Shown piece by piece: positions 3,001 through 32,289 of a stretch of DNA of 64,000 nucleotides. The position numbers and the translations under genes are program-made. Within the stretch, counting starts at the first letter, position 1. Every line of letters starts with the position of its first letter. The stretch covers positions 73,656,001 to 73,720,000 of the forward strand of contig NC_087444.1 of the NCBI RefSeq assembly GCF_036321535.1, read 5' to 3'. This DNA is from Camelus dromedarius. Its lineage: Eukaryota. Under the pieces are notes generated by a model. It was not told where the DNA came from. It saw only the letters and a list, made by a program, of their open reading frames with translations, and did no database searches.

Positions 3001-4843
3001 TCCTGGGGAAACAGAAGTCTGTGCCTGGCCCTCGCCTTCTCCCAGTAGAGAGCCAAGAAGTTCTGGTCCTACCCAAGTCCCACTGATTCTGGGCCCAGAT
3101 TCTGGGGCATAGTCCACTCCCCAGTTAATAACTCCGGTGTTCTGGAACCCCAGTCCCGGCTCTTCGAATATCCAGACCCTTTGTCCTCAACGTCCCACAT
3201 AAAAGTCCACACACTACTTCACCTAGTCTCTGATCCGTTAGGGGACACAGAATCCGGACTCCTCTCCCAACATCTCCCGATTAGGAGATCCAGAATTGGG
3301 GTGTGCAGCCCCAGTACCACTATCCTGGCCCCGTGTCGCACAGACCCGCCCTCTGGAGTCCAAGCCCCGCCCAACAAGGGCCCTGCCCCGCCCCCGCCGT
3401 CGCACCTGCTCGGTGGCCGCCGGCGGCCCCGAGGGCAGCCCTGGCGGGGGCGTGCCCCGGCGAGGAGCGAGGGGAAGCCGAGCCGCAGGAGCCGGGCCCC
3501 GGGGAGGGTGCGGGCGTGCGCACGGGTGAGGGAGCTGGCGACGGGCCGCTGGGGGGCGGCGGGCTGGGAGGGAGCCCGTGCTCCAGCAGGAAGGCGTCCA
3601 GGTCCACGTACTCCACGTCGCCGAACGGCAGCGTCCGCTCCCACAGTAGCGGCGCCAGCAGACCCGGGCCAGGCGCGGTCCCCGGGCGTCCCCGTGGGGA
3701 CCCGCCGCCCACCACCGCCCCAGCTGAGGCATCCGCCGGGCCCGCCGTCTCCAGGCCCGGCCCCGGGACCGCGGCTGCCGGCGGAGCCGCCTTGCGCTCC
3801 TTTTCCTTCAGGAGACCTGCAGGCCAGGGAAATACCGGAGAGAGTGGGGAAGAAGAGGAAGACAGAGATGAAGAAACGATTCCGAGTGGAGAGAGACACG
3901 AGGAACAAGAGGATAGAGACCCACACCGCAGAGATCCAGAGAAATAGGGGACAGAAGGGAGGTGAGGGAGAGATCGGAGAGAGAGGGCAAGGATCCAGAG
4001 AGAGGAGGGGACACAGGCTCAGAGAGGGAGAGAGACCCAGAGAGAAAAGACGGAGATGGGGTTGGCAGGCCGAGAGAGGCACAGAGGGATAGAGACTCAG
4101 AAAGAGGGGAGGGCCGGGATGCCAAGAGGAAGATGGGGACAGAGACCCAGGAAGGCATAGAGACACACAAGGGGGACAGAAGTTCATACAGATGTAGGTG
4201 GAAGGTTGGGCAGGTGAGAGAAAGAATGACAGCTCTGTAATTCCCCTGTAATCTATCCCCTTCCTTGCGCACTGTACCCCTTTCTCCCCGCCCCCACAAT
4301 CTGTAAGGGGCAGGAAGGGGCTCTATTCCTGGGGCACATTCCTCATCCCTAGACTCCATGTGACCCCAGGAGGCCCCGCCCAAGCCCGTGTAACTACCGT
4401 GTGAGCATCCGACACACCCCCTCCCTTCTCCCTGGACCCCAGAGGTCCAGATTCTCGGAACCAAAAGGAAGAGGGGTCTAGGGCTTAAAGTCTTGGGTCC
4501 TCGGGGTGGACGGGCATGAGAGAGCCAGGACTTTGGGGTACTGAGGGATCTAGGGGCCCCAACAACTAAGTATTTGAGTAGATAAAGGTTGGGAGGATGG
4601 ACTCTTGGCACATAAGAGGTAACTGTGGGACACCCCTCCCCCAGCAGTTGAGTCCCTAAGAGAGTAGAGTTTCTGAGCTGGGCGAGGTTGGGGCTAGAAC
4701 TCACAGCTGGCTGGCTCTTTGGGCTTGCTGGTCCCCTGCAGAAGGCTCCGCAGCCCAAGTAGCGCTCCCCCGCCAGGGGGGGCCCCGGCCGGGCCGCCCA
4801 GCAGCAGTGGGGCCGGGGTCCTGTCGCTCACGGGCCGCGCCAT
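1..4843 (-). CDS. DBP: D-site binding PAR bZIP transcription factor. Coding exons 4843-4705, 3816-3406, 1885-1674, 128-<1; exon 4 runs off the window start
   Basis: Spliced translation [17 protein letters not shown]...[25 protein letters not shown]...[24 protein letters not shown]...[29 protein letters not shown] (PAR plus basic region). All junctions are GT-AG with matching phases (139, 411, 212 nt exons). Confidence 0.98.
2444..2580. promoter_or_regulatory. DBP intron 2 E-box cluster (CLOCK:BMAL1-type enhancer)
   Basis: CACGTG at 2444-2449 and 2575-2580, CACGTT at 2496-2501, CACGCG (minus strand) at 2522-2527 and 2532-2537, in a CpG-rich patch. Intronic E-boxes are the established circadian control elements of Dbp. 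Confidence 0.85.
4335..4362. promoter_or_regulatory. Non-canonical E-box pair in DBP intron 1
   Basis: CACATT at 4335-4340 and CATGTG at 4357-4362. The position resembles the intron-1 E-box pair I recall for rodent Dbp. Confidence 0.45.
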
Positions 4844-10738: not shown

Positions 10739-13700
10739 CCCCAGGAGACCTCTGGGCGACCCCTTCCCAATGCTCTGGACCCCCTCTCTCAGCTCTGTCC
10801 CCTCTTTCTGGAACCCTGTCCTTCTAGGACCCCCAGCCTTCCTCTCCTCCCCACAGGGAGTCCCAGTTCCCCAGCTACTAAAGCAGCCGGGATGGAGAAA
10901 CCCCCACCCCACCTGCACCCCCGCCCCTTTTCCTCCTCTCTGAGCCTCTCCTGCCTCTTTCCCGAACCCTCCGGCCTCCCTCTCCCTCCCGACCTTCCTT
11001 CTCCTCTCTCTGCCTTCTGCTTCTCCCTCCAGCTACCTCTTGGTTTCTAATCCACACCCTCTTCTTGGCTCTCTTTTCCTCAAGCTCCCCCAGCCCTCTA
11101 ACTCCGTACCCCACCCTGCTGCTCTCACCTGCTCCTCCTCCTCCCTCTCCCTCTTCTCTGCTCCTGCCTCTTCTTTCTCCCTTCTCTCCCCCTTGTCCTC
11201 CCCACTCTCTCCCTCTCGGTCTCCAGCTCCTCTGTCTCCCCACCTCCTCCTCTCCAGCCTCTTCTCTCTGTTTCTCTGTGTCTCTCTTCTCTCTCCTCCC
11301 TTCCTCCCTCCTCCCTCTCCCTCTCTTCTCTCTCTGGGTGTTATTCAATTTTTCTGTCGTTGTTTGGGGTGTGGGGGGGTCCTCACAGCAGTGAACACTC
11401 CTCCTCGGGTTGGCGTGTGTGGGGGTTGGTGTCTAAGGGGCAGGATGGAGGGGTCGTTGAAGGGCTAGTCCCCACTCCCATCCGCGCTGGGGCCATGGGG
11501 GCGGGGGTGGCCCCGGACACCTGGGGCCCAAGAGCTGGCAGTTTCCATCCTCCGCAGAAGGCGGAAGGGGGGGGGGGCGCTTAAGGTGGAGCTGGGAGAG
11601 TCCTCGTTGTCTCCGTGCTCAGGGCCGTTGGCCCCGGGGGATCGGGGGTCTCCGGGCTCGCGGGGGCCCGGGTCAGAGGCTGCGCCAGCGCCTGCAGCCC
11701 CCGCCCAAAGCATCACTCGGGCCTCGGCCAGGGGCTCCCTTAACCCGGCTGAGGGATCCCCTGGGAGACTGGAGTGCGGTGTGGGCCGCTGACCAGGAGG
11801 GGGAGGCAGAGACCTGGAAAGAGAGAGGGAGGTGGGAGGAGGAGCTGGGAAGGCAGAGGCAAGAGAGCAGAGGTGAGATCAGAGAACTGCGGAGGCTTGG
11901 AGAGGGTAAAGGAGCTGAGCTAGGTGTGGAGAGAGGACGGAGGGAGAGCCAGGGAAGAGATGAGGGGGCGGTGGGGGTGGGGGCAGGAGGAAGAGAGACT
12001 GAGAGACTCACATACCTTGAATGAAAGAGATGCAGAAACGGATGTACACAGAGAAGAGACAGATAGAGACCCCCAGAATGAGAGGGTAAAATACAGAACG
12101 AGACAGATACAGAGGGAGGCAGAGAAAGAGAGACAGAGACACGCAGAGAAAGAGAGACAGAGTCACACAGAGAGACAGAGACACAAACAGAGATAGAAGC
12201 AGAGAGACCCAGAGACAGAGAGACCCTCAGAGCACTTAAGAGATGGAAGAGCAAGATGCCAGGCAGGAGGTATGAGGGGAGAGACAGAAACAGAAAATAA
12301 GATCTAAAGACAGAGATGCATAGAAACACACCCCTAGAGCAAGGGGCACAGAGAGGAGGAGACAGAGAAGGAGGCAGACGCACATGCACATCTACACATA
12401 GAGAGACTCATGCGGAGGAAGAGGTACCAGCAGACACCAACAGACAGACAGAAACAGAGACCCAGATACAGAAACACTGACATAAGGGGAGATACTAAAG
12501 AGAAATCAGGGAGACAGAGGCATTCAGAGATAGAGAATGAAATGGACACTCAAGGACACAAGATGTAGGGAGACAGACACCCAGAGAGAGGCAGAAATAG
12601 AGAGACACAGAGAACACACAAGAAAGAAAAGTTTGTATTCATTTTCCATTGTCACATAACAAATTTCTCTAAAACTAAGTCGCTTAAAGCAACACTGATT
12701 GTCTCAGTTCCTGAGGGGTAGCAATTAAGGAGCAGTTTGGTTGGGTGACTCTGGCTCAGACATCAACAGAGAAGTCAGGGTCTCTCATGAGGGTGCAGTA
12801 AGCCATTGGCCAGGGCTGCAGTCATCCGAAGGCTTGACTGGGGCTGGAAGATTACTTCCAAGCTCCCCTACATGGTGCTTGGCAAGAGGCCTCAGCTCCT
12901 CACCACATGGCCACTGGCTTCTCCCTCAGATTGAGTGACTTGGGAGAGAGAGAGAGAGAAGGTGTCTTATACGACCTAATCCCGAAAGTCACACAAAATC
13001 ACTTCTGCTTGATTCTGTTCATCGGAGATGAGTCACTAGGTCTGCCCACACTGAAAGGGGAAGTGATTAGGCCTCTCCTCTTGAGCAGAAGTATCTCAAA
13101 GACTGTGGACTTATTTTAGATACCATCACAGGTGGGGGGAGGAATAGAGAGCAATGGAGAGAGACAGACTCTTTAAAGTCCCAGGATGCTCTGATGTCAG
13201 TGACACACTTCTTCAAAAATGCAGGTATGTGTCGAGAGACACAAAGACAGTGGGAGCTGTAGAGACCAGGAAGAGACAAGCCAGAGGAAACAAATGCATA
13301 CACAGGTTAATTCATTTAATCCTCATAATATGCCATGTGGGTTATTTCCTATTATCATCATCATCATCCCCATTTTACGCATAAGAAAACTGAGGGACAG
13401 GGAGGGGTGTGAACCAGTGATCTGGCTCCAGAGTCCATGCACTTCATGAAAATGGTCTCCTGAGCAGTGCTGTCCAATAGAAGTTTCTGCGATGGTGGAA
13501 ATGTTCCTTATCTGCTCTGTGCGATATGCTAGCCACCAGCTACCAGTGTGGCAGTGGTTACTGGCTGGATAGCTCAGCTCTGGAGAACTAATGAATGCTG
13601 GCTACTTGCTGTGTGACAGTTGCTAAGTCTCGACACTTCTCTTATTCAGTTTCTTTATCAGAGAGGTGGTCAAGGATTCTAGCCAAACCCAAACACATGT

Positions 13701-14440
13701 GGGTTTGAATCCCTGCCTCCATCTCAAGGTGATGTCCCCCAGGAAGCCTCAATTTCTTCATCTGTATAATGAGTACAATAAGAAGACCTACCTATTTATT
13801 CAACAAATATTTATTGACTACTTACTATGTCCTGAAGGCTCAGGTTACAGCATCAAACAAAACAGCCACAACACCAAGTTCAGGGCAGCAGGAGGTGGGA
13901 TGAAGTGTCAGACCAGACATCATCTACTTTTAAAGTCATCCTCTCTTTTCCTGGAAATTCCAAAAGACTGCTCAACCTAGCATCTCATGATGTCACAGTA
14001 TACTTTGGGTTCTGATTGGCTGAGGGCATGGCAGTATTGATTAATGTCCTTAATATCATTTCTATTCTATTTCTTTGATATCAAAACATCCTATTTTGCT
14101 AGGTCTAAGACAACTCAGCATTTAAGGCTATATTTCTGCTCTCTCTTGCAGCTAAGTGTGGTCATGTGACTAAATTCCTGCCAGTAAGATGATAACAGAG
14201 GTGTTGTATAGCAGCTTTTAGAAAACACCTTATACATGAGCTGTGTGGGGTATTTTGGTCTTTGTATCTGCAGAGGTTTGAATGAGGTTGATTTGCAGGA
14301 GGTGAGGTCAGCTATGTGGTGGGAGTAGATCATATAGGGCTTTGTATGGCAGGGCTAGGATTTGAATTTTATTCTGAGTAAGATGGGAAGCCACTCAAGT
14401 GTTGTATACCATAGTAGTAGCATGATCTGAGTTAGGTTTT

Positions 14441-14566
14441 CTTTGAGGGGGAGGAGGTAATTAGATTTATTTATTTATTTTTAGAAGAGGTACTGCAGAT
14501 TGAACCCAGGACCTTGCACGTGCTAAGCGTGAATTCTACCACTTGAGCAATATCCTACCCCGTCAC
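14441..14566 (-). mobile_element. tRNA-Ala-derived camelid-type SINE
   Basis: Reverse complement gives ...GCTCAAGTGGTAGAATTCACGCTTAGCACGTGCAAGGTCCTGGGTTCAATC... plus an A-rich tail. Target-site duplication TTAGGTTTT at 14432-14440 and 14567-14575. Confidence 0.85.
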
Positions 14567-14734
14567 TTAGGTTTTGTAGTCATTATCCTAGGTCTTGTTG
14601 AAGAAGACTCTAAGAAGGTAGTGAACAGGCCAGTGTAGAGACACTGTAAACTGGGTGAAGAGTGGTGGTGGCTTGAACCAACATAGCAGCAGTGGAAATG
14701 GTCAACATAGTTGAATTTTGAACATGATAATATG

Positions 14735-15183
14735 TGTAACTAAAGAAACTGCAGGTAGAGTTGGAGGTGGGACAGGCCTGTAGTGGGAGTTCTCAGGCCC
14801 CGCCAGGCATCTTCAGTTAACAGGAGGGAGGCAAACCTACATCTCTAATAGGAAGGTGCGTTTAAGTTACTATCTAGCAGAAGAAGAAAACTTCTCTCCG
14901 CCTCTTGGCCCTGTTAGCTCAGCCAATCAGAGACTTTAGCAGCCCAACCAATGAGAAGCCTCCATACTTTGGACTCCCAGTTTCCTCCAATGGCCTCTTT
15001 GGTTATTACAGGCCCCTTCAACTCTCCTCTTTTCCCTCCAAAGGCAAGTTCCCCTGCCTTGTTCTCTGTATTTGTGTGTGGTCACCTATCTTTGAGTATC
15101 CTCAATTGCAATTCTTCTGCTATTCCCTAATAAACTCACCTTTGCTGGTAAAATAACTAGCCGTTATATTATTAAAGTTGGCA
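14735..15183 (+). mobile_element. Solo ERV LTR (family not assigned)
   Basis: TG...CA ends, internal CCAAT motifs and an AATAAA near the 3' end. Boundaries approximate. Confidence 0.5.
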
Positions 15184-15244
15184 AGGAGATATGAGGGTGA
15201 AGTATAGGGGTTAATGTTTGATTGAATTGTTTTCAAGATATCAT

Positions 15245-15640
15245 GGAATAAGCCAGAAAGAGAAAGAAAAATGCCATATGATATCGCTTATATGTGGACT
15301 CTAAAAAAAAAAAAAAAAAAAAACAAATAAACCACTTATTAGTTATAACTTAGATGAATGATTTCTTGAATATGTATAAGCACATTTGACTGTTATGATT
15401 GGATTATTGCATTCTGTTGATTCTTATTTTGTGTTTGGCTTTATTCCTTTGATAACTATGTAAGTTTAAAAAACTAAAGGTCTAAACTGTTCTTAGCAAC
15501 AATGAACAATAAATATATGTATATTTTAAAATGTGCAGTATATTGTGTATATGTATTTGCATGCTATATACTGTATATGTGCAGTCAAATTATGTCAATT
15601 TTACCTAATAAAACTGGAAAAAAAAAAGACCAAAAAAAGA
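15245..15640 (+). mobile_element. 5'-truncated L1 3' end with A-rich tail
   Basis: L1 3'UTR-like ...GAAAAATGCCATATGATATCGCTTATATGTGG..., internal A run, terminal AATAAAACTGG followed by an A-rich tail. Confidence 0.65.
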
Positions 15641-16620
15641 AAGGACAGATAAAGCCAGATAATTAAACAGAATTCTTCTTAGAAAATCCCTTAAAGACTC
15701 CTAACTCCTGCTTCAGAGATGCCCCCACCCAGGGCACTCAGTTGGAAGCCAAAGGCAAGCTTCCTCATACATAGGATAGTGTTGGTAGGTTGGGGGATCA
15801 AATAGTCACTTCCTCTCCTCAGGAGCACACCCAGAACATTGGCAGGAGGATCTATTCTCTGCCTAGTAACCTGTGACATCATGGCCCATCCTAACTCCCC
15901 ATTGGCTAAGAGGCCTGCTTTTTTTCTTGGGGGAAGAATACGTTGCTCTCTAGGCCCCAGTAAACCTTAAATCATATCCTTGCATCTGAGATTCCATCAA
16001 ACTGCTTGTTCAGGGACTCTCCTACAAATTTGAAATTTTGTGGTTAATTGTGGGGGCAGAGGTCAAGGTGGCAAGGAAGATCATAGGCCATGGTGGCCTT
16101 CCATTCCATCGTACTTATTGCTTCCTGCCTTTTAAACCCCACCCCTCTGGCCTGTTGGGTGGAATAGATTTCTGTTTAGCACAAAGTCACGTTATAACAC
16201 TGTGGCTCCCAATTAGCTATTCACTCAGGAAAGTGTTTAGTCTGTGCTTCAAGACCCATCACAATCTTCCAGATTTCACTCAGAGTTCCATTATTCTTTT
16301 CTCAGAGACCATGCTGGGGCCAAATGAGAACCCAAGTTTCCTCAGTCTGGAACTTTCTGGAAATCTGACACTGCCGAACTTTCCTCACGTGTATTTCCCG
16401 CCTTTTCTGGTCACCCTCCCCTCTCACTGGCTTTGGCCAATCATCAGGCAGTACAAATCTGACTAGCACCCAGTGAAGTCATACCAGCTCTTTCATTGGA
16501 TTGGCTGTTTGGTCAGAGCTCTAGCCATGTCTAGGCTCCTCAGATTTCCTCAAAGCCTTCTTCATTTTCCCCCCAGAGACCGTCTCAGCACAGATCAGGA
16601 GATTCCCCAAGAGTTGAGAC

Positions 16621-16626
16621 TTTATT
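16621..16626 (-). terminator. NTN5 polyadenylation signal (AATAAA)
   Basis: TTTATT on the plus strand, about 240 nt past the NTN5 stop codon. Confidence 0.7.
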
Positions 16627-16868
16627 GAGGGGAATAGCTGCGTAGATCACAGGTCAAGTGTTCTAGCCAGAGACTGAGAGTCCGGCTTGCAGTTTGCTGC
16701 CTTCAGTTCAGCATCCCTCCTGCCTGCTCTGGGCCGGCGCATGCCATTGACGTCAGGAGCTCCGCAGTATCTGATTGGCTCGCTGAGGGACGGGCCGTGG
16801 AGGTAAAGGCTCAGCTCCGGGTTGCTTCCAGTTCCTTACTTGGCATTCGAGGACCGCAGGCCCAGGTT

Positions 16869-19800
16869 CTAAAGCCTGGGTTCAGAGCTCGGAGTCGCAG
16901 GCTGCAGTTCGCGGCAGCCCCCTGTGCGCTCCTCCTGCTGCAGCCGCCTCAGCGGCCGGCTCCAGCGGGGCCTCCAGGGCAGCGCGAGGCCGTGGCGGTC
17001 GAGGACCAGGCGCGCGGGGTCGGGGTCGCCGGCCGCACTGCCCAGCAGCAGGTAGTGGGTGCCTGGCCGTAGGCGCAAGCAGCCGCAGGCCAGGTCGGCG
17101 CGGGGCACCCAGGCTTCCTGGCCGCCGCTGCGCACGGGCCGGGCCCGCTGCTTGTACACGGCCAGCACGCGCACGGCCAGCCGCTGCCACACCGGGCCTG
17201 CCGCTTCAGACGCCAGCACCTGGGCGCGAAGAACTGCGGGGAGGGGAGATGTCAGGCCTGGGCAGTGGGGAGCTTCCGGGGTCCCATAGGCTCAGTAGTG
17301 GTAGAGAGAGGCCCGGGACCCGAGAATGGACTTCCAGGATGCCGTCAGGAAGAAGAGAGACCTTGAACATTTGAGGCTGAGAGGTCTGGGGGGGGGGGGG
17401 GTCTGACCCTGCTTTATGAAGAGTGAGGCCTCCTAGAGGAGAGGGGTCAAGGCAACGAAAGCGGGGCTTATGTGATGTGAGTTTGTGTTATAGGATTGTG
17501 ATTGGGAAGGGGTACCTTCCAGGTGTCTCTCTGGAAGAGGGGAGACCAGACCGGGAGAGGAATCCAGGTGCCCACTATGGATATGCCAGGTGCGGCGCTT
17601 GGGAGGTAATATTGGAAGCCGAGGATACAGGAATTACTTAAATGTTGGAGGTACCAGAAGGACCCTACAGTGAATGGGTCCAGGAACAAGGCAGAAGAGG
17701 TAGGTCTGCGGTCTAAAATGCCACGGGGTCAGGTGTTAGGAGCAGAGCCCTTGGAAAAGAGAGGTTTTGCCAGGGGAGAGAATCTGGATTAGGGATTAAT
17801 TTGGGGGCTGGAAGGTCATACTAGTGGTGCTTCACATGGTGTCCTCTCTGAGGAGGTGAGGTGAGACTTGTTGGGAGCAGGACTCTGGCTTGGTAAGCTA
17901 GATCTATGAGGCAAAAGATCCTTGTGGGAGGTGGGGGTCTAAGATTGAAGTCTAAGAACACTAGTGGCCAGTTGAAGAGCCTCAAGGAGGGGAGGTCTGG
18001 GGTCCTATACCATTGAGGGAAGTTACTGCGGCTGGACTGAACTCCTGAGTGTCCAAGAGAGCAGAATTACCCGACGTCATAGGCTCTGAGGTCATGGGTC
18101 TGGTGTGGACTGATGGATTAGGAGACTGGGGATGAGTCTCTGACAGTAGGGCTATGTCTCAAGAGAACTGGGACCCTGAAGGGAGGCAGAGAGGGTCTGA
18201 GATAGGCAAGACAGAGCAAGGGTCCCTTCCATTCAACCAATTTCCCTTTCTCTTTCTCCTTCCATCCTGAGGAGAACACCACCCTCCCACAGAGATATGA
18301 TGCTGAAGGACATCGTGGAACTCTACAAGGCCAAGAATATGAGGGAAGAGGACATATAGGAAGGTAAGGAACACCCCCCTTGGCATTTGTCAGCTCTCCA
18401 GTTAGGATCTAGATCAGGTAGGGTCATTTACCTGATAGAGTCCACACCCATTTCCATTTAAGATGAGGAAACTGACGGCCAGAGAAGGGGGTGGCTGTGA
18501 GGTAGAGCAGAACGCCTGAACAGCTGCAGCCCTTTTACTCCCCCGCACTCACCGTAGTCCTGCTGGCAGTACCTCCGAAGGCTCATGTATACCCTGGGGT
18601 CCGTGATATTGCAGTAGTTTTGACATCGAGGGTCTGGGGAGGGTCAGGCTGTCTGCAGTGGGCTCCTGAGGCCTAGACTACAGCATTCTGCCCCCTGCCC
18701 ATCCCGCATTCCAACCTGATGGACAGCTGGGGTGCCCGAACCCTTCGGACGCCTCAGTGGGCCACCCCTGTATCCCCACCTAGGGGCCACATCAGCCCCT
18801 CCCAGATCCCTCTTGCTGCCAGAGAATTTCACACCAGCCTATCTTACCAGAGCTGTAAGCATCAGGGGTTGTAGCAATGGTGGTGGTTGCCTCGGGAATT
18901 CCTGGGAGAGAGCAGAGGAGAGATTTAGCTTTTTGGTATCCTCTCCTTCCACAGCTCCCCTGAGGAATCCAGGCATCCAGACCCCAAATGGGTACTCTCT
19001 GGGTGCCCAACAATGTAAGCACAGTTTGTCCTCTCTAGAACCTAGACCCAGGAGTCCAGGTTCCCTACCCCCTCCTCCCTGAGACCCAGGAGTCCAGCCT
19101 CTTCCTCCCCCAGACTGAGGAGACTGGAATTTCAGTCTCCACATGTCAAAGGACTCAGAGTTCGGCCTCCAGCCTCTAGCTTCTAGCTTCCATCTCCCAG
19201 GGACCCTCACCCCAGCTGCCCACTGGAGATCTGGGACGTCTCCCTCCCGCCCCACCTGGGACTTGTGGCCCTGTCCCTCAGGACTCACGCTGGCACGGCA
19301 TCCTGGGGGAGCGGCTCTGCTGGAAGCCAGGACCACAGCGGTTGCATGTCAGGCCAGTGACCCCTAACTTGCAGGAGCACTGTCCACTGGTCTGGTTGCA
19401 GGTACCACCTGTCGCCCCAATAGGATGGCACTGGCAGGCTACATGAGGGGAGGATCCAGGGATGTGGAGTCCAGGCTCCCAGCCTCTTCTCCCCAAGACT
19501 GGGGAGACTGGAATTCCTTGTCCCCTCCTCCCTCAGACCCAGGAGCCACGCCCCCAATCCCCTCTACCCTCAGACCCAGGAGTCAAGTTCTGCCTCCCCT
19601 CCCTCTCGGCAGGGCTTCAGGCTGCACTCACCCCTGCAGGCCCTGCGGCTGGTGATGGGCTGGCTGGGGTCCCTCCAGAACCCCGGCTGGCAGTAGTGGC
19701 AGTGCCGCCCAGCTGTGTGGTGGCGGCACCGCTCGCAGACACCCCCACTGCGGCCACCCGACAGCCTGAACAGCTCAGAGTTGAACCTGCAGCGGCGGGC

Positions 19801-22800
19801 GTGCTGGTTGCAGGAGCAGGCTAGGGGCAGGGTGGAGTCGGGGCATGTCAGGCCCGGCCCTGTGTTCCCCTTCCCCACCTTTCTCCCCGCTGCCCTCAGG
19901 ATGGAGACTGCCTGGGGGTCTGGGTAAATGTGGGCCCTACAACCTCTTCCTTCTCCTCTTTCAACCCGTGCAGTGGACTGGAGCTGTAGGCCCTAGAGGG
20001 CTGCTGGATGTCTGTGTGAGCCCAGAGGTGGGCGTAAAGAAGGGTGGCGGCTCCGGGCAGGGGCTGCGAGTCAGGCCCCTACGTGTAACTGTCTCCCTGT
20101 GTTCCTTGGGCAAGTGATTTCTCCTTTCTGTAGCTCAGTTTCCTCTGCTGCCAGATGACATTTATAGTGTCTACCTGATGAGATTTAAATGAAACCCACT
20201 AGCTATAAAGTGCTTAACTCAAGGCCTAGGCTTGACACAGAGCATGTGCTGGCCTGTTTCGAGTGACCACATACCAGGTGCCATGTTTTAAGTGCTTGGC
20301 GTGTTTCCTTCTCACAGCAGCTTTGTTAGACTGGTGCTGTCATCATCACCCCCATTTTACAGACACGAACACTGAGGCGGAGAGGTGCCGTGCCTGCCCA
20401 TGGTATTGCAGCTGAGGGGAGGTCAGAGGTAGGATTGGAACCCAGGCCTTCTGGCTCCAGAGTCTGTGCTCCTAGCAGCCACACTCCAGTGCCTCTCACA
20501 CAGCTCACATGAGGACATGAGGCATGTACATTTTCCTGGAGAGCATTGATCAGATTTTCTAAGGCAGTGGCTCTCAGACCTTGCCACTTACCTGAATTAC
20601 TGAGGAAATGTTTAAAAAGAACAACTCAGATTCCAGGGCTTCTGTGGGCCCAGGGGCCTGTACTTCTAGCAGGAATCCCAGAGTGAGATGCTAACAGAGG
20701 GGGCTCATGGGCCATTCTTTGGAGAGATGTAAGGGGTTTTGACTTGAGGAAATTTGAGAGGCCAGGACGGGCAGGTCCTGAGGACCCCAAGGAGTAGTGG
20801 TCAGGTCAGGGAGCTGAGACAGCTGTGTGTTCTTGCAGAAATGACTCCCCCTCTCTGAGCCTCGATTTCCTCCCATTTAGTAGGGATCTCAATTCTGCTC
20901 TCCAAGGTTTTGTAGGCATCAGAGATGGCAGTGCTCTTCAGATTATGAGGGAGTGCTGTCGGGCTTTGGATTCTTTCTGACCGGACAGTGATCACTTCAC
21001 CTCGCTTCTCTCTAGAGAACTTGGATGGGGGGATATTCAGGCCACCGTGTCTGTGAAGCCCATAGCTCCACCACAAGAGTTATTCTCACCGTGTCCGCCC
21101 AGACCCTTCTCCGTCACAACCCTGTGGTCTCTTACCCAGGCTCAGAGGGCAGTGCCCAGCTCAGCCAGGGGGATGTGGTGATCCTCTGAGGGACTGCCTC
21201 CCCAATTCCCAAGCCCTGTCCAGGCCCAGGATGAAGCCAGCCCCACCCTCAGGCCACGTGAGTCTGCCCTCCCTCACTCCTCTGTTGGGGCCTCAGATCT
21301 AACTGGTGGGAATGGGCCAACTGGACAGAGTCCTGAGGTGGTGGGGACAGAGGGTCAGAGAAGACCCCAGCGGGGATGCGGACAGAGTGGGGAGCTGTGC
21401 CAGTAGTTCAGTCTGTCAGTCCACTTGACATTGCAGGAAGAAATAGAGGGGAGGGACAAAGAATGTGGGAGATGGAGAGAGTGAGATCCATGGAAGTACA
21501 GACAGAAAGAGCGTGTGTGCGTGTGTGTGTACGTGTGTACGTACCTGTTGGACTGGAGGTACCTCCCAGGATTAGTAACACACTTAGAGCCTCCAGCAAG
21601 GGCTGCAGGCTGGAGGTGGGAGTGGAGGAGGCCTGTCTCTGAGGGGAGCTGCTGGAGGGATGGGGAAGGGCCTGGACTCTGGAGGCCAGTCTGGAAACAG
21701 TGTGGAGAGGGAGGGTGTTGCGCCGCCCTGGGGTGTGCTGGTCCAGCTGGAGAGCACGGTGTTGACCCAGCATCTAGGAAGGCTGTTTTCGAGTCCAGTC
21801 CTGTCTGACCCTTGCTGGCCATGAGACCTGGACCAAGAGACCCATCCCCTTGGGCCTGACCCCCCTCGTCTGGAGAGTGGTAACCCTGGTGGACTCAGGA
21901 AGCTCTTTCTGTGTGCCAGGTACTGCATTCAGCTTTATTCCAAGGACTTTATGGATGTTAAATTATTGAATTTTCACTATAGCCTGTAAAGGAAATGCTG
22001 TTACTATCCTCATTTTCCAGGTGAGGAAATGGAGGCACAGAGAGATTAGGTCACTTGCCTGGGGTCACAAAGCCAGAAGGCAGAAGAGCCGGGATTTGAG
22101 CTGGTTGGCTGCTGAGGCCACGCTCCTGTCTGCCTGTAGAACGTCTAGTGTGACAGCACCTGACAGAGCCTGGCAGGGACCAGCTAAGACCCTTGGGCTT
22201 GGCCTCTCAATCTCAGTTTCCAGCCTTGCCACTGACTGGCCATTTGTCCTTGCCCAAGGTACTTTCCACCTCTAGCCTCGGTCTCCTCATCTGTAAAATG
22301 GGTCTGTGTAGTACCTGCCAGTCACACAGTAGATGCTGGTTAAATACATGTCTAATGAATACTTTCCCCACGTGGTTGATTTGATGAGTCCAGACGTCCA
22401 GATGAGTGCGGCTGTGCTGTTCCCCTCCAGCCAGTCCATAAATCCCACCCGAGTGTCCAAGTGTGTGCCCCAAGCCAGGCCCTGGGCTGAGTGCTCAGGA
22501 AATGTTACCCATCCTCATGATTGAGTGTGGGGAGAGGTTGGAGGCCCTAGTGAGTGTTTAAGTAGCTGGGAATCTGGGGATGGCAGAGATTCGGGGCAGA
22601 TAGGTGGTGGCGGGTAGTGAGGGGAGGAGACGAGGGGCCCTGTCTGGAGAAGCACATGGGGGGAAGCAAGGAGGGAGCAGCCCTAGGGAAGGACAGAGCT
22701 TCCTGCCCCTCAGGGACAAGGGACCCCATGCTGGGGTCATGGGGTCAGGTGGTAGGTGAGTGAGGATGGGGGACCCAGGACTCACGCAGGCAAGGGTGAG

Positions 22801-23416
22801 GGTGCCAGGGTGTGGCGGGCCGCCAGGGCCGGTCGCGGTGGGATGGGCGGCAGCTCTCGCACCCTGGGCCGGTGGTGTGGTGGCGGCAGCGGCAGCGGGG
22901 TGGCCGGGCTCGGGCAGCACAGCGGGCCGCGTGGCCGTGGCACTGGCAGCGGCCTCTCACCCCTGCTGCCGCCAGCCCTGCCCGACCCCCAAACTCCACG
23001 CGGAGGTGACTGGCCACTACACTGGCCTTGGGGCCGGGTGCAACTCGGAAGGTCACCCTCTCGGGGCCTCCCAAGGCCCGGGGCCAGGCAGTTCTGTGCC
23101 ACAGTGATCTCCAGGGACCTCCGGTGGCCCAGGCGGTTGACAGGACCAGGGCTGGGGGTCCTGGGGTGCAGAATCGCAGGCTGACAGATGTCAGGAGGAA
23201 GGTCCCACCCAGGGCCAGAGTCAGACTGCCATTGCAGGTGGCCTCGGGACCAAAGTCCACCCCTGGGGAGAAGAGACAGGCCTGGGGACAGGAGGCGGCC
23301 AGGCCAGGCAGCTGGGTCACTGGTGGGAGGCAGAAGCGGGGGCCGCCCCCTGGATGGTAGCAAGGGTCTGCACTGGCCTGGCTCAGGAGGAGCAAGAGGG
23401 CCAAGGTCACGGGCAT
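16869..23416 (-). CDS. NTN5: Netrin-5, 489 aa. Coding exons 23416-22786, 19820-19632, 19438-19289, 18901-18848, 18633-18553, 17233-16869
   Basis: Exons sum to 1470 nt with GT-AG junctions. Signal peptide [19 protein letters not shown], three laminin-EGF repeats ([42 protein letters not shown]) and a C-terminal NTR/C345C domain. Confidence 0.97.
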
Positions 23417-25867
23417 GGTTCCAGCAGAGGCAGGTACCTGGAGAGGAGAAGAGTGCCCGGCTGAGAGCCTCAGGCACCTTCAGGGGTCCGATTCCGCCCT
23501 GCTCCCCGGGCTCCCTGAGGAACCCCGGCATTCCACCCCCAGCCCTGCCCAAGACCCCTCCCAGCTGCTTCCAAGCGAGGAAAATAGTTCCATCTGGGGA
23601 GAATTACTGTTTACATAACCCGAAGGGGAAAGAACGCAAACCAAATCGAGAATTTTGCCTGAACTAATCCATAGCTTAACACCCCAGAGCTATCTGTCAG
23701 TCAGTGTCGGGGGGCAGGGGCCCTGGGGAGGGGGCAATGAGGGGGGGACAGATGGGGAAACCTAGAGAGGGCACAAGGGGGAGGGGGATTTAGAGACTGA
23801 GGAAGCCTCTGAGACAAAGAAAAAGAGACAGAGATAGATAGAGACACAGACAGAAAGACAGACAGGAGAGGAGGAGACTCAAGTGTAGGGAAGGGCCAGG
23901 CAGGGAGAAGGAACCACGAGGAGAGAGGACAGACACAAGGGGAGGCCAGGAGGCCTGGACAGATGGCAGCCAGGCAGCAGAGTCCTCAGGGACTGCAGGG
24001 ATCTGGTCCTAGGGAGCCTGGGGGCTGGGACAGACAGTGGCAGTTGGACTCAAAGACACCCGTGGAGCAGGAGGAGAGCAGACAGTGCAGCAGGCCTGAC
24101 TGGCAGGGAGGGGAGCAGGAGAGGGGAAGGGCCAGGGAGCCCGGGGCCCAGGGATCAGAAGCCAGAGGCCAGGCCCTGACCTACTGGGATGAGAGTGGAG
24201 GCCCTTTCCCATGTAGGGCCCTAACCTTGTTCTCCACACCCTGGGCATGGAGGGGGATTATCCCAAACAAAGGGGCCTCCCTGCCACCCACCCCCAGCCT
24301 CCAGTTGCCCTTAACCCTTTCCCACCCAGGTATGAGGCTCAGAGAAGTGTGCTAAGGAACAGGATGGGGATGTCTGGGTCACTCTGGGTTGGGAAGTGAG
24401 TGTGGTATCCCTGTGGGGTCAGGAAGGAAGATACCTTGGTGTCCCTTGGGATCGGATGACCCTGTGCTTGGATTTCTGAGGACTTTTTGGTAATTTCTGC
24501 CATCCTAGGCCTCAGGGTCCAAGAATCAGAGCCCCCACTTTCTCTACTGGTCCTAATGTCCCCAAGGCAGATGGGGGAACAGATGGAGTCGGGGTAGTGG
24601 GTGCTGAGGCGGTAGATAAAAGAGGCAGGACTGGACAGGACCAGTTGCTGGGGCACTGGAAGGGCCAGAAATCTAGACACCCAAATGATGGGAGGGAGGA
24701 ACGACTTGGTGCTGAAATGTCCCGCGCTCTCCCTTTCCTGGGCCGGTAGCCCCTAATGAGGAGCTCACTCAGATCTGGGACCTTAGAACTTTTCTGGGCC
24801 CCACTGTCACGGCCTCTGGTTCTGAATCTGGACCCAGGTTTGTCCCAGAGCTGGGAGTCTGTTAGGCACCTGTGGGTGCGGGTGGGATCACATCCTCCCC
24901 CTGCCCCATATGCTGCACATGGCCCTCTGCGCCTCCGGAGCAGCTTGGCGCCATTTTGCACTCCTCCCTGGGCATTTGCCCCAGTCCTTCAGCACCCGCC
25001 TTGTTAAGGACCTCACCCCATCTCCCACCTCTCCTCTCTTGCCTGGGTGGTTCACGGGGTACCACTTTCTGGCTCTTAGCAGCTTGGGCATCCAGGCTTT
25101 GTTCCCCAGTGTTCCTGAGGGATCCAGAAGGCAGCCCGTGCCCACCGGGGAGGCCCGATATCCAGGCCCTAGTCCCTACCCCTTATAGGAACTTTAGTCC
25201 CCTCGTCACTCCCCCTTAAAGACCTTAAGGAGTAGCTGTGCTCCTACCAGATGCAGAGTCAGGCCTAGTACCTGGGCAGTGTAGGGGTCCACCTAGGACC
25301 CAGGCCCCTTTTCCCTGACTCTCTTGCATGCACCCTGCCCTTCACCCCTGATGTCCAAACCTGCGCCCAGGAAGAGAGTGTCCTCTGCATTTAGCTCCTC
25401 ACAGGTTCTTCCCTCCCGCAGGAGCTTGGCGGCCAGCGTGGGCTCCAGCGTAGGCTCTAGGGAGTGAGTGAGGAGTGGCTGTTCTCAGGCCCCAGGCTAG
25501 TGGGGCTTCTGGGCGGGAGCTCAGAGCAGAGCCGGCAGCATCCAGCACCACCCCCACCCCAGTCCCCTGGCCAATGCAACCACGCTCTCGCTGCTCTCTT
25601 CACAGGGACCCCTGGCAGCCACACCACCCAAGACTGTGTGGGTTGTGAGCACCGTCACCCTCCAGGGACCTGCAGCCAGACAGTCCCAAGCCGGCTGGCC
25701 CAGCAGGCTCAAGGCAGGTAGGAAGGGATAGTGGACAGATGACCTTTCTGGGTCTGAGGTCCCTGCTCCACTCACACTCAGCCCCCTGCCCTTCGGGCTC
25801 CTCTAAGAGCAGGCAGGCAGGCAGGCTCAGCCCCATCACGTGGTGGCTGTGATCTCGGGGAAGGGGC

Positions 25868-25960
25868 TGACCTGCGGGGCGGGTTCAGGGCTCCACATGC
25901 TGAAGTGGAAGGTTGGTGTCTGGCTGGGTGACCCCAAACCAGCCCCTCTTCCCCTCTGGA
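25868..25960 (-). other. Candidate non-coding first exon of NTN5 (donor CAG|GTCAGC at 25871)
   Basis: A 3' splice site (CTCTTCTCCTCTCCAG) just upstream of the NTN5 ATG implies a non-coding upstream exon. This donor about 2.4 kb upstream is only a candidate. Confidence 0.3.
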
Positions 25961-28900
25961 ACCTTCTGTCAGCTCTGGGTTAACTGAGCATTAAGGCCAG
26001 TTGCTTTAAAGCCTGAAAAATCAATGCTCCTGGAAGGATCAGACCAGCCGCCAGAAAACCCAAAGACGTGGGCCAGTTTCTAAGATGGTGGCAACGAGGT
26101 GGAGGAGATAAGAATGCCTCACGCCTCAGAGGTTCTAGGGGCCAGAGGGAGAAATCAGGGGCCCTGACAGGGACAGAGATCCAAGCCGGTCTCCGCCATG
26201 GTATATTTCCTGCGAGGCCTCAATACCTGTCGTGAAGTTTTGATGTCAACATTGCTGTCAACTCTGTTACATACCCAAATTGTCTGACTAGAAAAATACG
26301 TTTTCCATCAATTCCCACTGAGAAAAGCAGACATTTGGGGACCTACCATCTGGGGTGGGAGGACATAGCCAGGCAATCCGTGATTCTAGTTCAGGGTGAC
26401 CCGCACTGCAGTGGAGGGGCCCGCCAATTTGAGAGTCAGCTGTGAGGATGTTACCTACAAAGAGAAAGGGACTGAGGATAGAGACACCCCCAAATGAGAA
26501 GGGACATATGGGATCTGGGGCGGGCAGTGAGAGTGACAGGGTAGCACAATGCAGCATGCACTGTGCTCATCCATTCAGCTCAGAATGACTTCCCCTGTGT
26601 GTGACACTCTGCTGAAGATCCCGTGTGACATGTACAGAATCCCCATCCTTGTCAGGTTCACCATCCAGAGAGAGCAGAGATGGCCACCAAAGAGTAACAG
26701 TAATTATGTTCTAGAGTGTGGTGGAAAGTGACAGATGTTTGGAGCGAAAGAAAGGAAGGAAGTAGATGGGGTGGGGTGGGCGTCAGAGGGGACATTTGGG
26801 CTGAGACCTGAAGGAGGTGAGGGCAATGCTACCTGGGCATCGGGGCAGGAGTGACCCAGGCAGAGGGCGTTGCCAGTGCAAAGGCCAGTTCTGCCAGAGA
26901 AACTCAGGAGGAAGGTTTAGGGCTCACTTTATTCCTGCGCACCTGCAAGAAGTTTCTAAAGCTAAGGTTCCCTGGAGGGAAGCTTGCTTCCTCACTGTTG
27001 TTTTTAATAGCCTGTGCTGCCTGAGGTGATTAGCACCCCGGAATGTGGCTGGCAGGGGGTGTACAAGCAGGCAGAGCAGAGAGGAAACATTCCCAGAGTT
27101 GAGAAGGGGACACGTGGGGGGATTCCTCAAGTATCAGGCACCTTTACCCTCACAGCGGCCCAGAAAGGAGGCAGGATCTCCCAGGGACCAGCTCTGAAGT
27201 GGGCTCAGCAGGGTGGGACCCTCACCTCTGGGCTTCCACAGATCTTTTATCCCTACCTTGGTGTCACCGAAATCACAGAGGCCCCACAAGGCCAGGCAGG
27301 TCAACCCCTGAGTAACTGGAAGGAGAGTTTCTTGGCGTGTGCGCCCTCAGGACAAATGGAAAAATCAAGGACCATAATTAAGAGCATGGATTCCTGAATC
27401 ACTGTCTGTTCAAATCTAGGCTCCCCCTCTTTCCTACCTGTGTGACCCAAAGCGAGTTTCTTAACCTCTCTGTGCAGTAGTTTCCTTATCTGTTAAATGG
27501 GCTTAAAAATGTACCTTCCTCGTGGAAAATCGTGAGGACCAAATGAGCCAGGACAGGCTTACAGTCTCGTATCTGAAACTCTTTGGACCAGACATGTTAC
27601 AGAACCCGTGTTTCAGGCCCTTGTGGGGTGCATAGGTTATATATCACGCAGCTCCCCCAGCGCAGTTTGGGTGGCATCCCATAATCAAACATTGTTTCTG
27701 CAGCAAAACATGTGGGCAGTCACACCAGGATAAGTCAAGTCTAGGAACAGCTGCAGGTCTCTTTAGGCCAGATTTGTTCCCAGACGAGTTCTATTCCGGT
27801 TGGGCTTTGTCGCTGATCTTCAGGGAAGTGGCAGATAAGGAATTGTGGAGCAGGATATAAGCACTGAAAACAGTGCCTGGCTCCAGGCAGGAACCACAGA
27901 AGCATCAACCTTGAGTCATTATTTTCAGTGGCCTTTCAGTTGTGCAGGCTGATGTGAGGCCAGGAGAGGGAGCTCTTAGTACTCGAGGACAGAGGTGGCC
28001 GCCAGACTGACTATCTGCTTTGCAGAGCTCAGTACAAAATGAAAAGCCAGACTGCCTTTCTCAAATTTGTGGAGAATTTCTAGCTGGTGCGAGCAGAGCC
28101 GGACACAGAGCAGGTCACTTTGGGTCTCAGGACTTGTGCAGCTGCTCAGGTCACACTCCATGGTGGGTCGTCAGGGGAACAGAGGAAGGGAGAGGACAAA
28201 GCGGGTCAGGACACACTGGGGACCCGGAGTGAAAAGACTGTTTCTGGGAGCCCAGGGGAGAGCTGGAGGAGAGGCTGACTCAAAAAGAAGCAAGCCAGAA
28301 GAAGGGATTATCCACCCCATTACAAGGATGGGGAAACTGAGGTTCATGGAGCCCAGTCAGAGCCCAGTGAAGTCGGGGCGGGAGCTGGATGGGGATCTTG
28401 GTGGGTTCAAATGTATAGGCCTCACTGAGATCGCACGGCACGCCCACTGTGATCCAAAAGACAGACTGTAGTGTGTGTGTTGGCAAGGATGTGAAGAAGT
28501 CAGAACCCTCATAGGCTGCTGGTGGGAATGGAAAATGAGGCAGGTACTTGGAGAACAGTCTGCGGTTCCTGGAACTGTTAAACACAGAGTTATTTAGTTA
28601 TCATATGACTCAGCAATTCCACTCCTAGGGAAATACTGGAGGGATATGAAAACTTGGGTCCACACAGAGGTTCGTATGTGCGTGTTCACAGCAGCATTAT
28701 TCCTGATAGCCCCATGGCGTTGCCCATGTGTCCAGCAGCCGATGAACTGATAATAAAATGAGGCATATCCGTGCAATGGAACATCAGTCGGCTGTGAAAA
28801 GAAACCAGTGACATCCTCACAAATGCTGCAACATGGATGAACCTTGGACATGGGACACTGAGTGAAAGAATCCAATCACGAAGAGCCACTTGTACAATTC

Positions 28901-30088
28901 ACTTACATGCAGCGTGCAGGCTAGGTAAATCCACAGAGATAGAAAGTAGATTAGTTGGAAGGAGGAGGCGGGAGAATGGGAAGATTGGGGTGAGAATGGC
29001 TAAGGTGTGCAGGGTTCCTTTTTGGGGTGATAAAATTTTCTGCAATTAATTATGATTGTTGCCCAGCTATGTGAATATACGGAAAGCTATTGTACACTTT
29101 AAATGGGTGAATTATATAGCATTTGAATATTATCTAAATGAAGTGGTTACCAGAAAAAAAAAAGATGTAATATAAAGACATAAATATCACAGATGTGAAT
29201 ATAAAAGTTAAATGTAGGCAGCTTGAGGTGGCAGCTCAGAGAATGTGACGGAGGCAGGAGGTGGGAACTGCCAGTCCCTGAAGTCCTGGTCTAGAAAGGG
29301 CCCAGCATCACTTCTGCCATATTTGATTGGCTGAGGCAGTCACAGGCCCGCCCAGACTCAAGGGAAGGACCGTCAAAGGGTCTGCAGCCAGCTTGAATCC
29401 ACCACGTCCACCAACAGTGGTAGGAAACACTTAGTTACCCTGGGAGGGGCCCTTCCCAGTGCAGCTCAGCAGGGGCTGTGGTTAACCCCATTTTACAGAG
29501 GAGACTGAGGCTTAACTAACGTACTCTGAGGTGCCCCGCCAGGAGGAGGCAGGACCCACGTGCAAAGCTGGGCTGTCTGGCCTCAGTCTGTGCTCTGAAC
29601 CTCCATACTACACAGCCTTAACAGACTGAGCTCCCCAGGAGTGAGGATTCATGTAGTAAATACTCTAGACGTATTTATTTTACACTTACTGAATACTTCT
29701 TGTGTGCTTGGCACTGTCCTAAAAATGTTACAAATGTCACTACCTGTAAGGTAGTTCTGTCAGGTTAGACCATATGAAATGGCTGTTTGTGTAGGTAAAA
29801 TATGGTTGAATACTGGCACTTTGAAGTGTTTTGACCTAATCTTCGTGTTTAATGGGCAAGGAAACGGATTCAGAGAGGTGAAGTAACTTGACTAAAGTCA
29901 CACAGCACTGGTAAGGGGTGGAACTGGGATTCAGACCCAGGCCAAACAGGCCCAGGGTCTGTGCTCTTAGACCTCCACAATGGAGGCCACTAGATATGCA
30001 TGGAGGGGCTGAGTGAGCGAATGAACCTCCTGCCCACCCAGCCATCCCCCCCGACTTCAGTCCTTCCTCTCTCTGCCCTGCAGCCACC

Positions 30089-31111
30089 ATGAAACTCCTC
30101 CGGGCCACTTGCCCTTCCTTGTCCACCATCTTCTTCCTCTTTGTCATCTTCGTGGTGTCTGCCATCTTCCACTGCCACCAGCGCCTGGCTCTGGTGCCCA
30201 TCCCCTGGGCCTACCAGGGTCATGTGGTCCTGGTCTCCAGACACCTGCCCAGCGGGGGCATGTTCACCATCAACTCCAAAGGCCGCCTGGGGAACCAGAT
30301 GGGGGAGTACGCCACCCTGTATGCCTTGGCCAAGATGAATGGGCGGCCAGCCTTCATCCCACCCCAGATGCACAGCACTCTGGCCCCCATCTTCAGAATC
30401 ACCCTCCCTGTCCTGCACGACACCACGGCCAGCAGGATCCCCTGGGAGAACTACCCACTGAACGACTGGATGGAGGACCAGTACCGCCACATCCCAGGGG
30501 AGTACGTGCGCCTCACCGGCTACCCCTGCTCCTGGACCTTCTACCACCACCTGCGCGCGGAGATCCTCCAGGAGTTCACCCTGCACGACCACGTGCGGGA
30601 GGAGGCCCAGAATTTTCTGCGGGATCTGCAGGCCAAGTGGGCCGGGCAGGCCACCTTCGTAGGGGTCCACGTGCGCCGTGGGGACTATGTCCATGTCATG
30701 CCAAGGGTGTGGAAGGGCGTGCTGGCCGACCGGGGCTACCTGCAGCAGGCCCTGGACTGGTTTCGGACCCGCTACCGCAGCCCGGTCTTCGTGATCACGA
30801 GTGACGACATGGCCTGGTGCCGGCAGAACATCAACGGCTCCCTCCGGGACGTGGTGTTCGCCGGCAACGGCCAGCAGGGCTCACCTGCCAGGGACTTTGC
30901 GCTGCTCATCCAGTGTAACCACACCGTCATCACAGTGGGCACCTTTGGGATCTGGGCTGCCTACCTTACAGGTGGGAACACCATCTACCTGGCCAATTTC
31001 ACCCTGCCCAACTCCCCCTTAGACATGATCTTTAAGCCACAGGCAGCCTTTCTGCCAGAGTGGGTGGGTATCGCAGCCAACCTGGGGCAGGCCAGAGGGA
31101 ACGACCCCTAG
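30089..31111 (+). CDS. SEC1: Alpha-1,2-fucosyltransferase SEC1 (GT11), intact single coding exon, 340 aa
   Basis: Uninterrupted ORF with type II membrane anchor, [21 protein letters not shown] and FGIWAAYL motifs. SEC1-type features: [23 protein letters not shown]-terminus. Kozak GCCACCATG immediately after a 3' splice site (AG 30082-30083). Sits upstream of FUT2. Confidence 0.93.
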
Positions 31112-32289
31112 CCGTGCTCCTCTTCTGCCTCGTCTTCGGGTCTAACAGGCAGCATGAGCTTGGACACCTGAGTTTAAATCCAGGCTGCTCTGCCTCCCAG
31201 CTGGGTGACCTCAGACAACCTCTCGGTGACTTAGTATACCACCTGAAAAAAAAAAATAATGCAGCTCTTTGTGAGCACGCAGCGAGTTCACTTGGTGCCC
31301 TGGAAACATGGGGTGAGTGTTGGCTGCTAACGTACATGTGAGTGGCGCGCCCTGAACATTTGGACTGCTAGAAGAGAGAGGCTTTTTTTTTTTTTTTTGC
31401 CATCTCCTTTATGGCTCCAGGAGCATGGAGTCCAAATATCTTGCAGTTGCTTCCTGAGAGAGTTTGGCTCTTCCTGCCCTCAAATGAAGAGGAGCTGGGT
31501 GTTTTCAGCAGCTGAGAATTAAAGCTTTGGGTTTAATGGGCCCTTACCATGAAAAAATGTGAGGAAAACAGGATTTGAGAGGATGAATCACAGGGAGATA
31601 CCCTTGGTGGAGTGTGGGAGGGCCTGACAATGATGGCAGGACTCAGGCAGAACTCAACTCTGGGCTTTGGGTGTCTTTCCTGCAGCGGCAAAGGCACTCA
31701 CAGTCTACATGACATAGAAGCAGCAGGCGGACCACCTAGGGGCAGGGACCACAGAGATCGGAGCATGGCCGTGTCAGCAGTCACCTGGGTGGCCAGATAA
31801 CCTCACACCCTGCACTGCCTGTGCCCCCAGGACCTAATGCCACTCTGAGAAACCTCAGTATGGACGAAAGTTGGATGAACTGATTACAGTACTGGTTTTC
31901 CTGTGTTCAGTGTATTTTAAAGTATGGAGATACCAGTATTTTTATTGGTGTGCTACTCCTTTTTGGAGATTAAGAAAAAGTTAACGTATAGTTGTTTACG
32001 TTCATTTACATTTCCACCAAACATAGGTGCACTGGTTTAGAAAACATTTCAATCACCTCTCTTTCCTGTTTTAAACTCTTTCCAAGTATCTTATTATTTG
32101 AATTCCCATTTCTTGGCATATTCGTGAGGTTGAACACCTCTCCTTTCATGATTAATAATATTGTTACCTCCCCAGAGCCATTTTGGGCCCCAGTTGACTT
32201 CCTTAAGTCCTTCATGGTGTCATCATGGTGTGGGGGTAAGGTCAAGAGGATGTTAAAGAAAGCAGAAGAAGGGTCTGAAGGGGCAGGGA

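Follow-up and report, generated by a model that had tools for sequence, protein, structure and literature searches.

Antisense to NTN5, within its last intron, lies a 71-nt stretch with the outline of an exon, and it raises the question of whether it serves as a 5' leader exon of SEC1 and what the short upstream open reading frame (uORF) inside it could do there. A sequence-only reading of the 64,000-nt stretch of Camelus dromedarius DNA analysed here (the window) had proposed a direct splice to the SEC1 coding exon. The uORF would then share the SEC1 frame, separated from the SEC1 start by a single TAG, and would be either a re-initiation-type control element or the relic of an N-terminal cytoplasmic extension.

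An exon-like stretch opposite NTN5

All elements described for the candidate SEC1 5' leader exon (18293-18363, plus strand) are present on direct reading. A pyrimidine tract (18241-18268) precedes an acceptor zone (18270-18292) with AGs at 18270-18271, 18273-18274 and 18291-18292. The 20-codon uORF (18297-18359) opens with ATGATG at 18297 and closes with a TAG (18357-18359) that is also placed by the alignment described below, and the donor, AAG/GTAAGG, has its intron bases GTAAGG at 18364-18369. The same alignment sets off within the uORF an inner mini-uORF (18336-18359, MREEDI plus stop) that begins at an ATG common to most mammals. The candidate exon is single-copy in the genome, which rules it out as a repeat; about 100 nt downstream, outside the exon, lies a motif that we take to be MIR-like. 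A tblastn search with mouse NTN5, read from the mouse RNA contig L011, places the NTN5 coding exon that flanks this intron at 18554-18634 and the next one at 17234 and below, both on the minus strand. By this mapping the candidate, on the SEC1 strand, falls between the final two coding exons of NTN5 and is ruled out as a minus-strand NTN5 exon.

The donor at 18364 ranks fifth among the 3335 plus-strand GT sites of the whole window, as scored with a rough donor matrix. Pseudo-exon layouts are frequent in the window: 9 of the 14 comparably strong donors have an AG and a pyrimidine tract 50-150 nt upstream, and in 7 of the 14 the layout encloses a complete small ORF. Splice-like motifs alone are therefore no better than chance here. 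Local alignments and the motif search were run on window pieces from 17101 on, or with 16969-17006 masked. No Pfam family matches the 20-aa uORF peptide, the 48-aa camel extension described below or the macaque extension.

RNA data speak to the boundaries of the exon. All five sampled words of the 71 nt are present in five runs on record as RNA. A second word test took in the exon with a 100-nt flank on each side (24 words, 5 of them inside the exon). Five runs from four studies gave a share of exactly 0.25 (6/24 words), other RNA runs gave 0.46-0.71, and four large DNA-like runs gave 1.00. The recurrence of an exon-sized share argues for a bounded exon. That six words were present, not five, hints that the RNA reaches a little beyond 18293, for example from the acceptors at 18270-18274. 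The shares of 0.46-0.71 may reflect a longer exon, an admixture of NTN5 pre-mRNA, or use as a first exon, as in mouse, with transcription starting close by. Altogether, the candidate exon is probably real in camel.

The mouse locus bears directly on this question. Mouse Ntn5 and Sec1 have interdigitated exons on opposite strands, with Ntn5 exons 2-6 inside Sec1 intron 1 and Sec1 exon 1 beyond Ntn5 exon 6; Sec1 mRNA was quantified there with primers in exon 1 and exon 3 (Garrett et al. 2016, PMC4726805). Of these primers, the one in exon 1 can be aligned with the 3' half of the candidate in camel, an exact 10-mer included, and the one in exon 3 has an exact match at the start of exon B (see below) in eight mouse RNA contigs. 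Judged by the primer alignment and by the hamster locus, the candidate is apparently the counterpart of mouse Sec1 exon 1. None of the mouse RNA contigs L011-L018 contains the orthologue of the candidate; they begin with unspliced sequence ahead of exon B, so exon 1 would not be obligatory. One of these contigs, L011, carries spliced NTN5 at 308-1663 on its minus strand and Sec1 at 1852-3021 on its plus strand; it is an assembler fusion of the two mRNAs, joined where they overlap in antisense ahead of exon B. Taken together, orthology to SEC1 exon 1, the interdigitation in mouse and the exon-sized piece of RNA bear out the proposal of a plus-strand exon antisense to NTN5 within one of its introns. 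In NTN5, a knock-out or a variant towards the 3' end can also hit SEC1 leader exons on the opposite strand, as the mouse work noted.

SEC1 transcripts and reading frames in camel

The main coding exon of SEC1 (30084-31111, plus strand) begins after an acceptor AG at 30082-30083. Its ATG at 30089 in GCCACCATG opens the 340-aa protein, which stops at 31109-31111. This exact protein is present in a Camelus assembly, and its 90% cluster consists of Camelus and Vicugna; the camel SEC1 protein cluster also has 388-aa 'isoform X1' models among its members, along with a single protein derived from a Logan RNA assembly. The RNA contig behind that protein, L003 (1554 nt), is the only one found for camel; it aligns to the window in three blocks with GT-AG introns removed, namely 21138/21140-21257 (exon A), 25606-25717 (exon B) and 30084-31398. 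Exon A (21140-21257, plus strand, 118 nt; contig L003, model P0002) ends at a donor, gtgagtct, that is common to all other species mapped. The ATG at 21231 in this exon opens the 388-aa SEC1 isoform X1, adding 48 codons that continue across exon B to the canonical SEC1 ATG. Exon B (25606-25717, plus strand, 112 nt) is joined to the SEC1 coding exon in L003.

Exon B is reached by all four camelid long models. The dromedary model has exon A before it, as in L003, and the C. ferus isoform X1 model starts with an alternative leader exon, A1 (18954-19014, plus strand, 61 nt, cacag/.../gtaagc), before exon B; the vicugna SEC1 model starts near 19845 and enters SEC1 via exon B. In contig L003 and in all camelid models, the SEC1 acceptor at 30084 is joined to nothing but exon B. 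The annotated N-terminal extension of camelid SEC1 is thus made from exons other than the candidate. There are also 340-aa 'isoform X2' models of SEC1, whose leaders are unseen. An exact look-up of the 340-aa SEC1 protein returned genome records only and no RNA contig, and when the initial 130 residues of the long isoform were used in a fragment search, two non-camel proteins were the only matches, with no camel contig. None of the contigs retrieved has the 18363 donor joined to another exon.

The start of L003 lies at 21138, that is, at 'AG' followed by exon A. This break is suggestive of a branch in the assembly graph, where the intron end ...cccAG would have a rival in an upstream exon that, like the candidate, ends in ...AG. 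L003 also differs from the window at single bases. At 21173 the window has A and L003 has G, and the A creates a two-codon mini-uORF (ATG TGG TGA) in exon A. At two differences in exon B, L003 has the C. ferus residues VWDVSI and the window has VWVVST. These differences place L003 in another animal or species than the window.

An ab-initio model, KAB1273070 (366 aa), has a start exon on the plus strand at 28328-28400, 1.7 kb upstream of the SEC1 exon, for which no RNA support was seen. Between SEC1 and FUT2, the minus strand carries two long intronless ORFs in a low-GC stretch (39113-40482; 257 and 175 aa), which look like a processed retrocopy of some gene. A run of N at about 42000-42170 shows up as X where an ORF was translated.

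The distance from the TAG of the uORF to the SEC1 ATG was computed separately for each exon chain. On the direct join of 18363 to 30084 it is 9 nt, in frame, and the junction reads GAA G/CC ACC ATG. The arithmetic of the sequence-only reading was thus right, but the junction itself is without support and exon B is used instead. The distance grows to 121 nt when the candidate is joined to exon B, to 182 nt with A1 and B, and to 239 nt with A and B, and all three chains are out of frame (the last by +2). A hypothetical chain that keeps both A1 and A before B gives 300 nt, in frame, with the TAG as its sole stop. The proposed proximity of the two reading frames accordingly does not survive the presence of exons A and B between them. 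Re-initiation across a 9-nt spacer presupposes this unsupported junction. When A and B follow the candidate, 95 nt separate the end of the uORF from the exon-A ATG downstream. In every plausible chain, an ATG with an in-frame stop lies upstream of the main SEC1 start.

No open frame from the ATG of the candidate into the catalytic exon was found in camel. It is closed by the TAG at 18357, and in the chain through A and B then by a TGA in exon A and by phase: camel exon A, at 118 nt, is 1 mod 3, and the uORF frame meets the TGA 17 codons past the TAG. Since exon A is out of frame, neither a sense allele nor read-through at the TAG alone restores an extension through this chain. If A1 and A were both kept, TAG read-through or a rare sense allele could give camel SEC1 a cytoplasmic extension of about 120 aa, an outcome that we regard as hardly to be expected. 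Were it true, camel SEC1 would resemble in this respect the predicted long isoforms of primates and rodents.

The exon and its stop codon in other mammals

A search with the long isoform retrieved extended SEC1 models from many mammals. Six of these (macaque, Saimiri, Microcebus, hamster, Peromyscus and Talpa) open with residues that can be aligned with the last part of the camel uORF, and all six have Gln at the position of the camel stop. When mapped to their genomes, the Microcebus, Mesocricetus and Talpa models run from the orthologue of the candidate to exon A, exon B and the catalytic exon. Protein-to-genome mapping puts the exon-1 ATG of Microcebus, hamster and Talpa within the aligned block, at the syntenic place, and exon 1 in these species follows the pattern ATG ... 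CAG/CAA GAA G/gt. Their exon A measures 110 nt (Microcebus), 119 nt (hamster) and 95 nt (Talpa), in each case 2 mod 3.

The candidate exon was then aligned as DNA across nine species. At the site of the camel TAG, camel, C. ferus, buffalo and fur seal have TAG, vicugna has TAA, mole and mouse lemur have CAG and hamster has CAA; in warthog the codon is deleted. The site is thus a Gln codon in primates, rodents and mole, but camelids, buffalo and fur seal have a stop there. Camel, vicugna, warthog, fur seal, mole, mouse lemur and hamster share the ATG at 18336; buffalo has GTA instead, and the macaque protein has Ile. The ATGATG at 18297 occurs in Camelus only, the other species having GTCAGG. 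Annotated long isoforms with the uORF peptide, which the sequence-only reading had suggested looking for, are found in so far as the six models align to its end, but the Camelus start is absent elsewhere. As read from this alignment, the uORF stop is common to camelids, a ruminant and a carnivore and would be old, and the 20-codon form of the uORF is young.

A pyrimidine tract followed by a TCAG/GAGG-type acceptor is common to warthog, buffalo, fur seal and mole. The donor GT is kept in six of eight lineages; it is GA in fur seal and deleted in warthog, so the exon is dispensable in some lineages. Identity across the candidate exon is 0.65, compared with 0.56-0.63 for nearby intron and 0.90 for the neighbouring NTN5 exon. 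The uORF is not conserved above background, with only the inner ATG and, in ferungulates, the stop in common. No conservation of the uORF peptide was found in the nine-species alignment. Conservation as a sign of coding was rejected, the candidate exon being no better kept than intron.

The vicugna reading carries a caveat, because the exon lies in a divergent block there. Vicugna L004 4722-9141, compared with 13299-19033 of the window, forms a block of about 5.7 kb that is 84-87% identical with a ts/tv of about 1.3; the flanking DNA is 96.8% identical with a ts/tv of about 3. The block extends from the spacer between CA11 and NTN5 to the 3' region of NTN5 and includes the candidate exon. Window positions 17101-18292 are without a vicugna counterpart (16901-17100 were left out), and the vicugna NTN5 model is short (351 aa). 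The block may represent a divergent haplotype, a patch of paralogous sequence or a problem of the assembly, and the TAA in vicugna is to be read with this in mind.

Exon B is exactly 112 nt, bounded as cag/.../gtag and without a stop in the isoform frame, in eight species. No ATG is present at the canonical SEC1 start in many mammals, among them macaque, warthog, buffalo, mouse lemur, hamster and mole, and their start must therefore be in exon B or A. In most of the mammals sampled the SEC1 coding region spans more than one exon, with exon B, and often a start in A or B, giving the N-terminus. The literature describes the SEC1 coding region as monoexonic and pig Sec1 as a pseudogene for want of a start codon (PMC4398370). 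Exon B and the absent canonical ATG sit uneasily with both statements (PMC4398370).

A probable leader exon of SEC1 and the rival readings

We consider it likely, though well short of certain, that the candidate is a genuine plus-strand, non-coding SEC1 leader exon with an ordinary uORF, and the camel orthologue of mammalian SEC1 exon 1. As such, the exon would be non-coding in camels, offering 20 codons from the Camelus ATGATG or 6 from the common ATG, in both cases ending at the TAG. The TAG would have replaced a Gln codon before the camelid, ruminant and carnivore lineages split, or several times independently. Transcripts would run from the candidate to exon A (which precedes exon B in the RNA contig and the dromedary model) or A1 (which precedes it in the C. 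ferus model), and from there through exon B to the SEC1 exon. The orthology of the candidate, an exon-sized piece of it in RNA and the chain of A, B and the SEC1 exon in camel RNA are shown by the data; we infer both the camel junction from 18363 to exon A or A1 and any regulatory effect of the uORF. The uORF, if it acts at all, would do so as an ordinary leader uORF, lowering downstream initiation by way of leaky scanning or re-initiation. Little depends on the uORF itself.

A weaker but serious contender makes the exon the relic of a coding one. Translation of a long SEC1 isoform, with a cytoplasmic extension of about 85-100 aa, would once have begun in it; the TAG, among other lesions, would have retired it in camel, and primates, rodents and mole would still translate it. 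In Microcebus, hamster and Talpa the ORF from the common ATG is indeed open through exons A and B into the catalytic exon, the macaque, Saimiri and Peromyscus models have the same N-terminus, and the camel TAG is aligned with CAG or CAA. The many species without a canonical ATG require an upstream start, and exon B is free of indels, at 112 nt, in eight species. However, automatic (Gnomon) models favour the longest ORF, and the species were chosen for an open frame. Start positions vary among species, the ATG of exon A and those of exon B suffice as starts, the candidate exon is conserved at the level of the intron background, and the extension has no family match. The relic proposed by the sequence-only reading thus keeps one footing, in that the TAG stands at a Gln site of the ORF annotated for the long isoforms, but restoration by a sense allele or by read-through fails in the chain through A and B.

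That camel has no exon here at all, with the RNA signal coming from NTN5 pre-mRNA or genomic carry-over and the motifs arising by chance, strikes us as improbable. Similar motif layouts recur often in the window, flank words are also present in several runs, and conservation is at the intron level. Against this, the same share of 0.25 recurs in five runs from four studies, all of which contain every exon word, and the orthologous exon is annotated in three orders and was used in mouse RT-PCR. Exons A and A1, moreover, have acceptors, and L003 breaks at the acceptor of exon A, which points to an upstream donor. Still less credible, indeed very unlikely, is the direct splice to 30084, by which the uORF stop 9 nt before the SEC1 ATG would bring re-initiation control or a read-through extension. 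Its arithmetic is correct and the donor is strong, and the 340-aa 'isoform X2' models with their unseen leaders would leave room for it. Yet the junction is in no contig or model and all those seen use exon B, while a frame match of the uORF with SEC1 on a direct join is a 1-in-3 event beforehand. By established scanning rules, a spacer of 9 nt would also be poor for re-initiation, the efficiency of which rises with intercistronic distance.

Three known systems come closest to a non-coding leader exon with an ordinary uORF, the reading that we prefer. The opposite-strand arrangement of mouse Sec1 and Ntn5 is the same as that of the camel candidate within NTN5; in mouse, however, exon 1 is the first exon, whereas acceptor-like sites lie upstream of the camel candidate. 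The exon chain proposed for camel recurs in predicted long isoforms, for example those of Macaca fascicularis (442 aa), Microcebus (423 aa), Mesocricetus (426 aa) and Talpa (433 aa), and the primate, rodent and mole isoforms share with the camel exon the common ATG and the ...GAA G/GT exon end. They differ from camel in having Gln and an exon A of 2 mod 3 where camel has the TAG and a frame change in exon A. The longest annotated camel isoform (388 aa), unlike the primate, rodent and mole models, starts at the exon-A ATG. Like the uORFs of ordinary mammalian 5' leaders, the camel uORF is a short ATG-to-stop ORF well ahead of the main start (95 and 239 nt in the chain through A and B), and nothing distinguishes it from them. 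On the preferred reading the candidate is a leader exon of a known kind, already described in mouse and annotated in other mammals.
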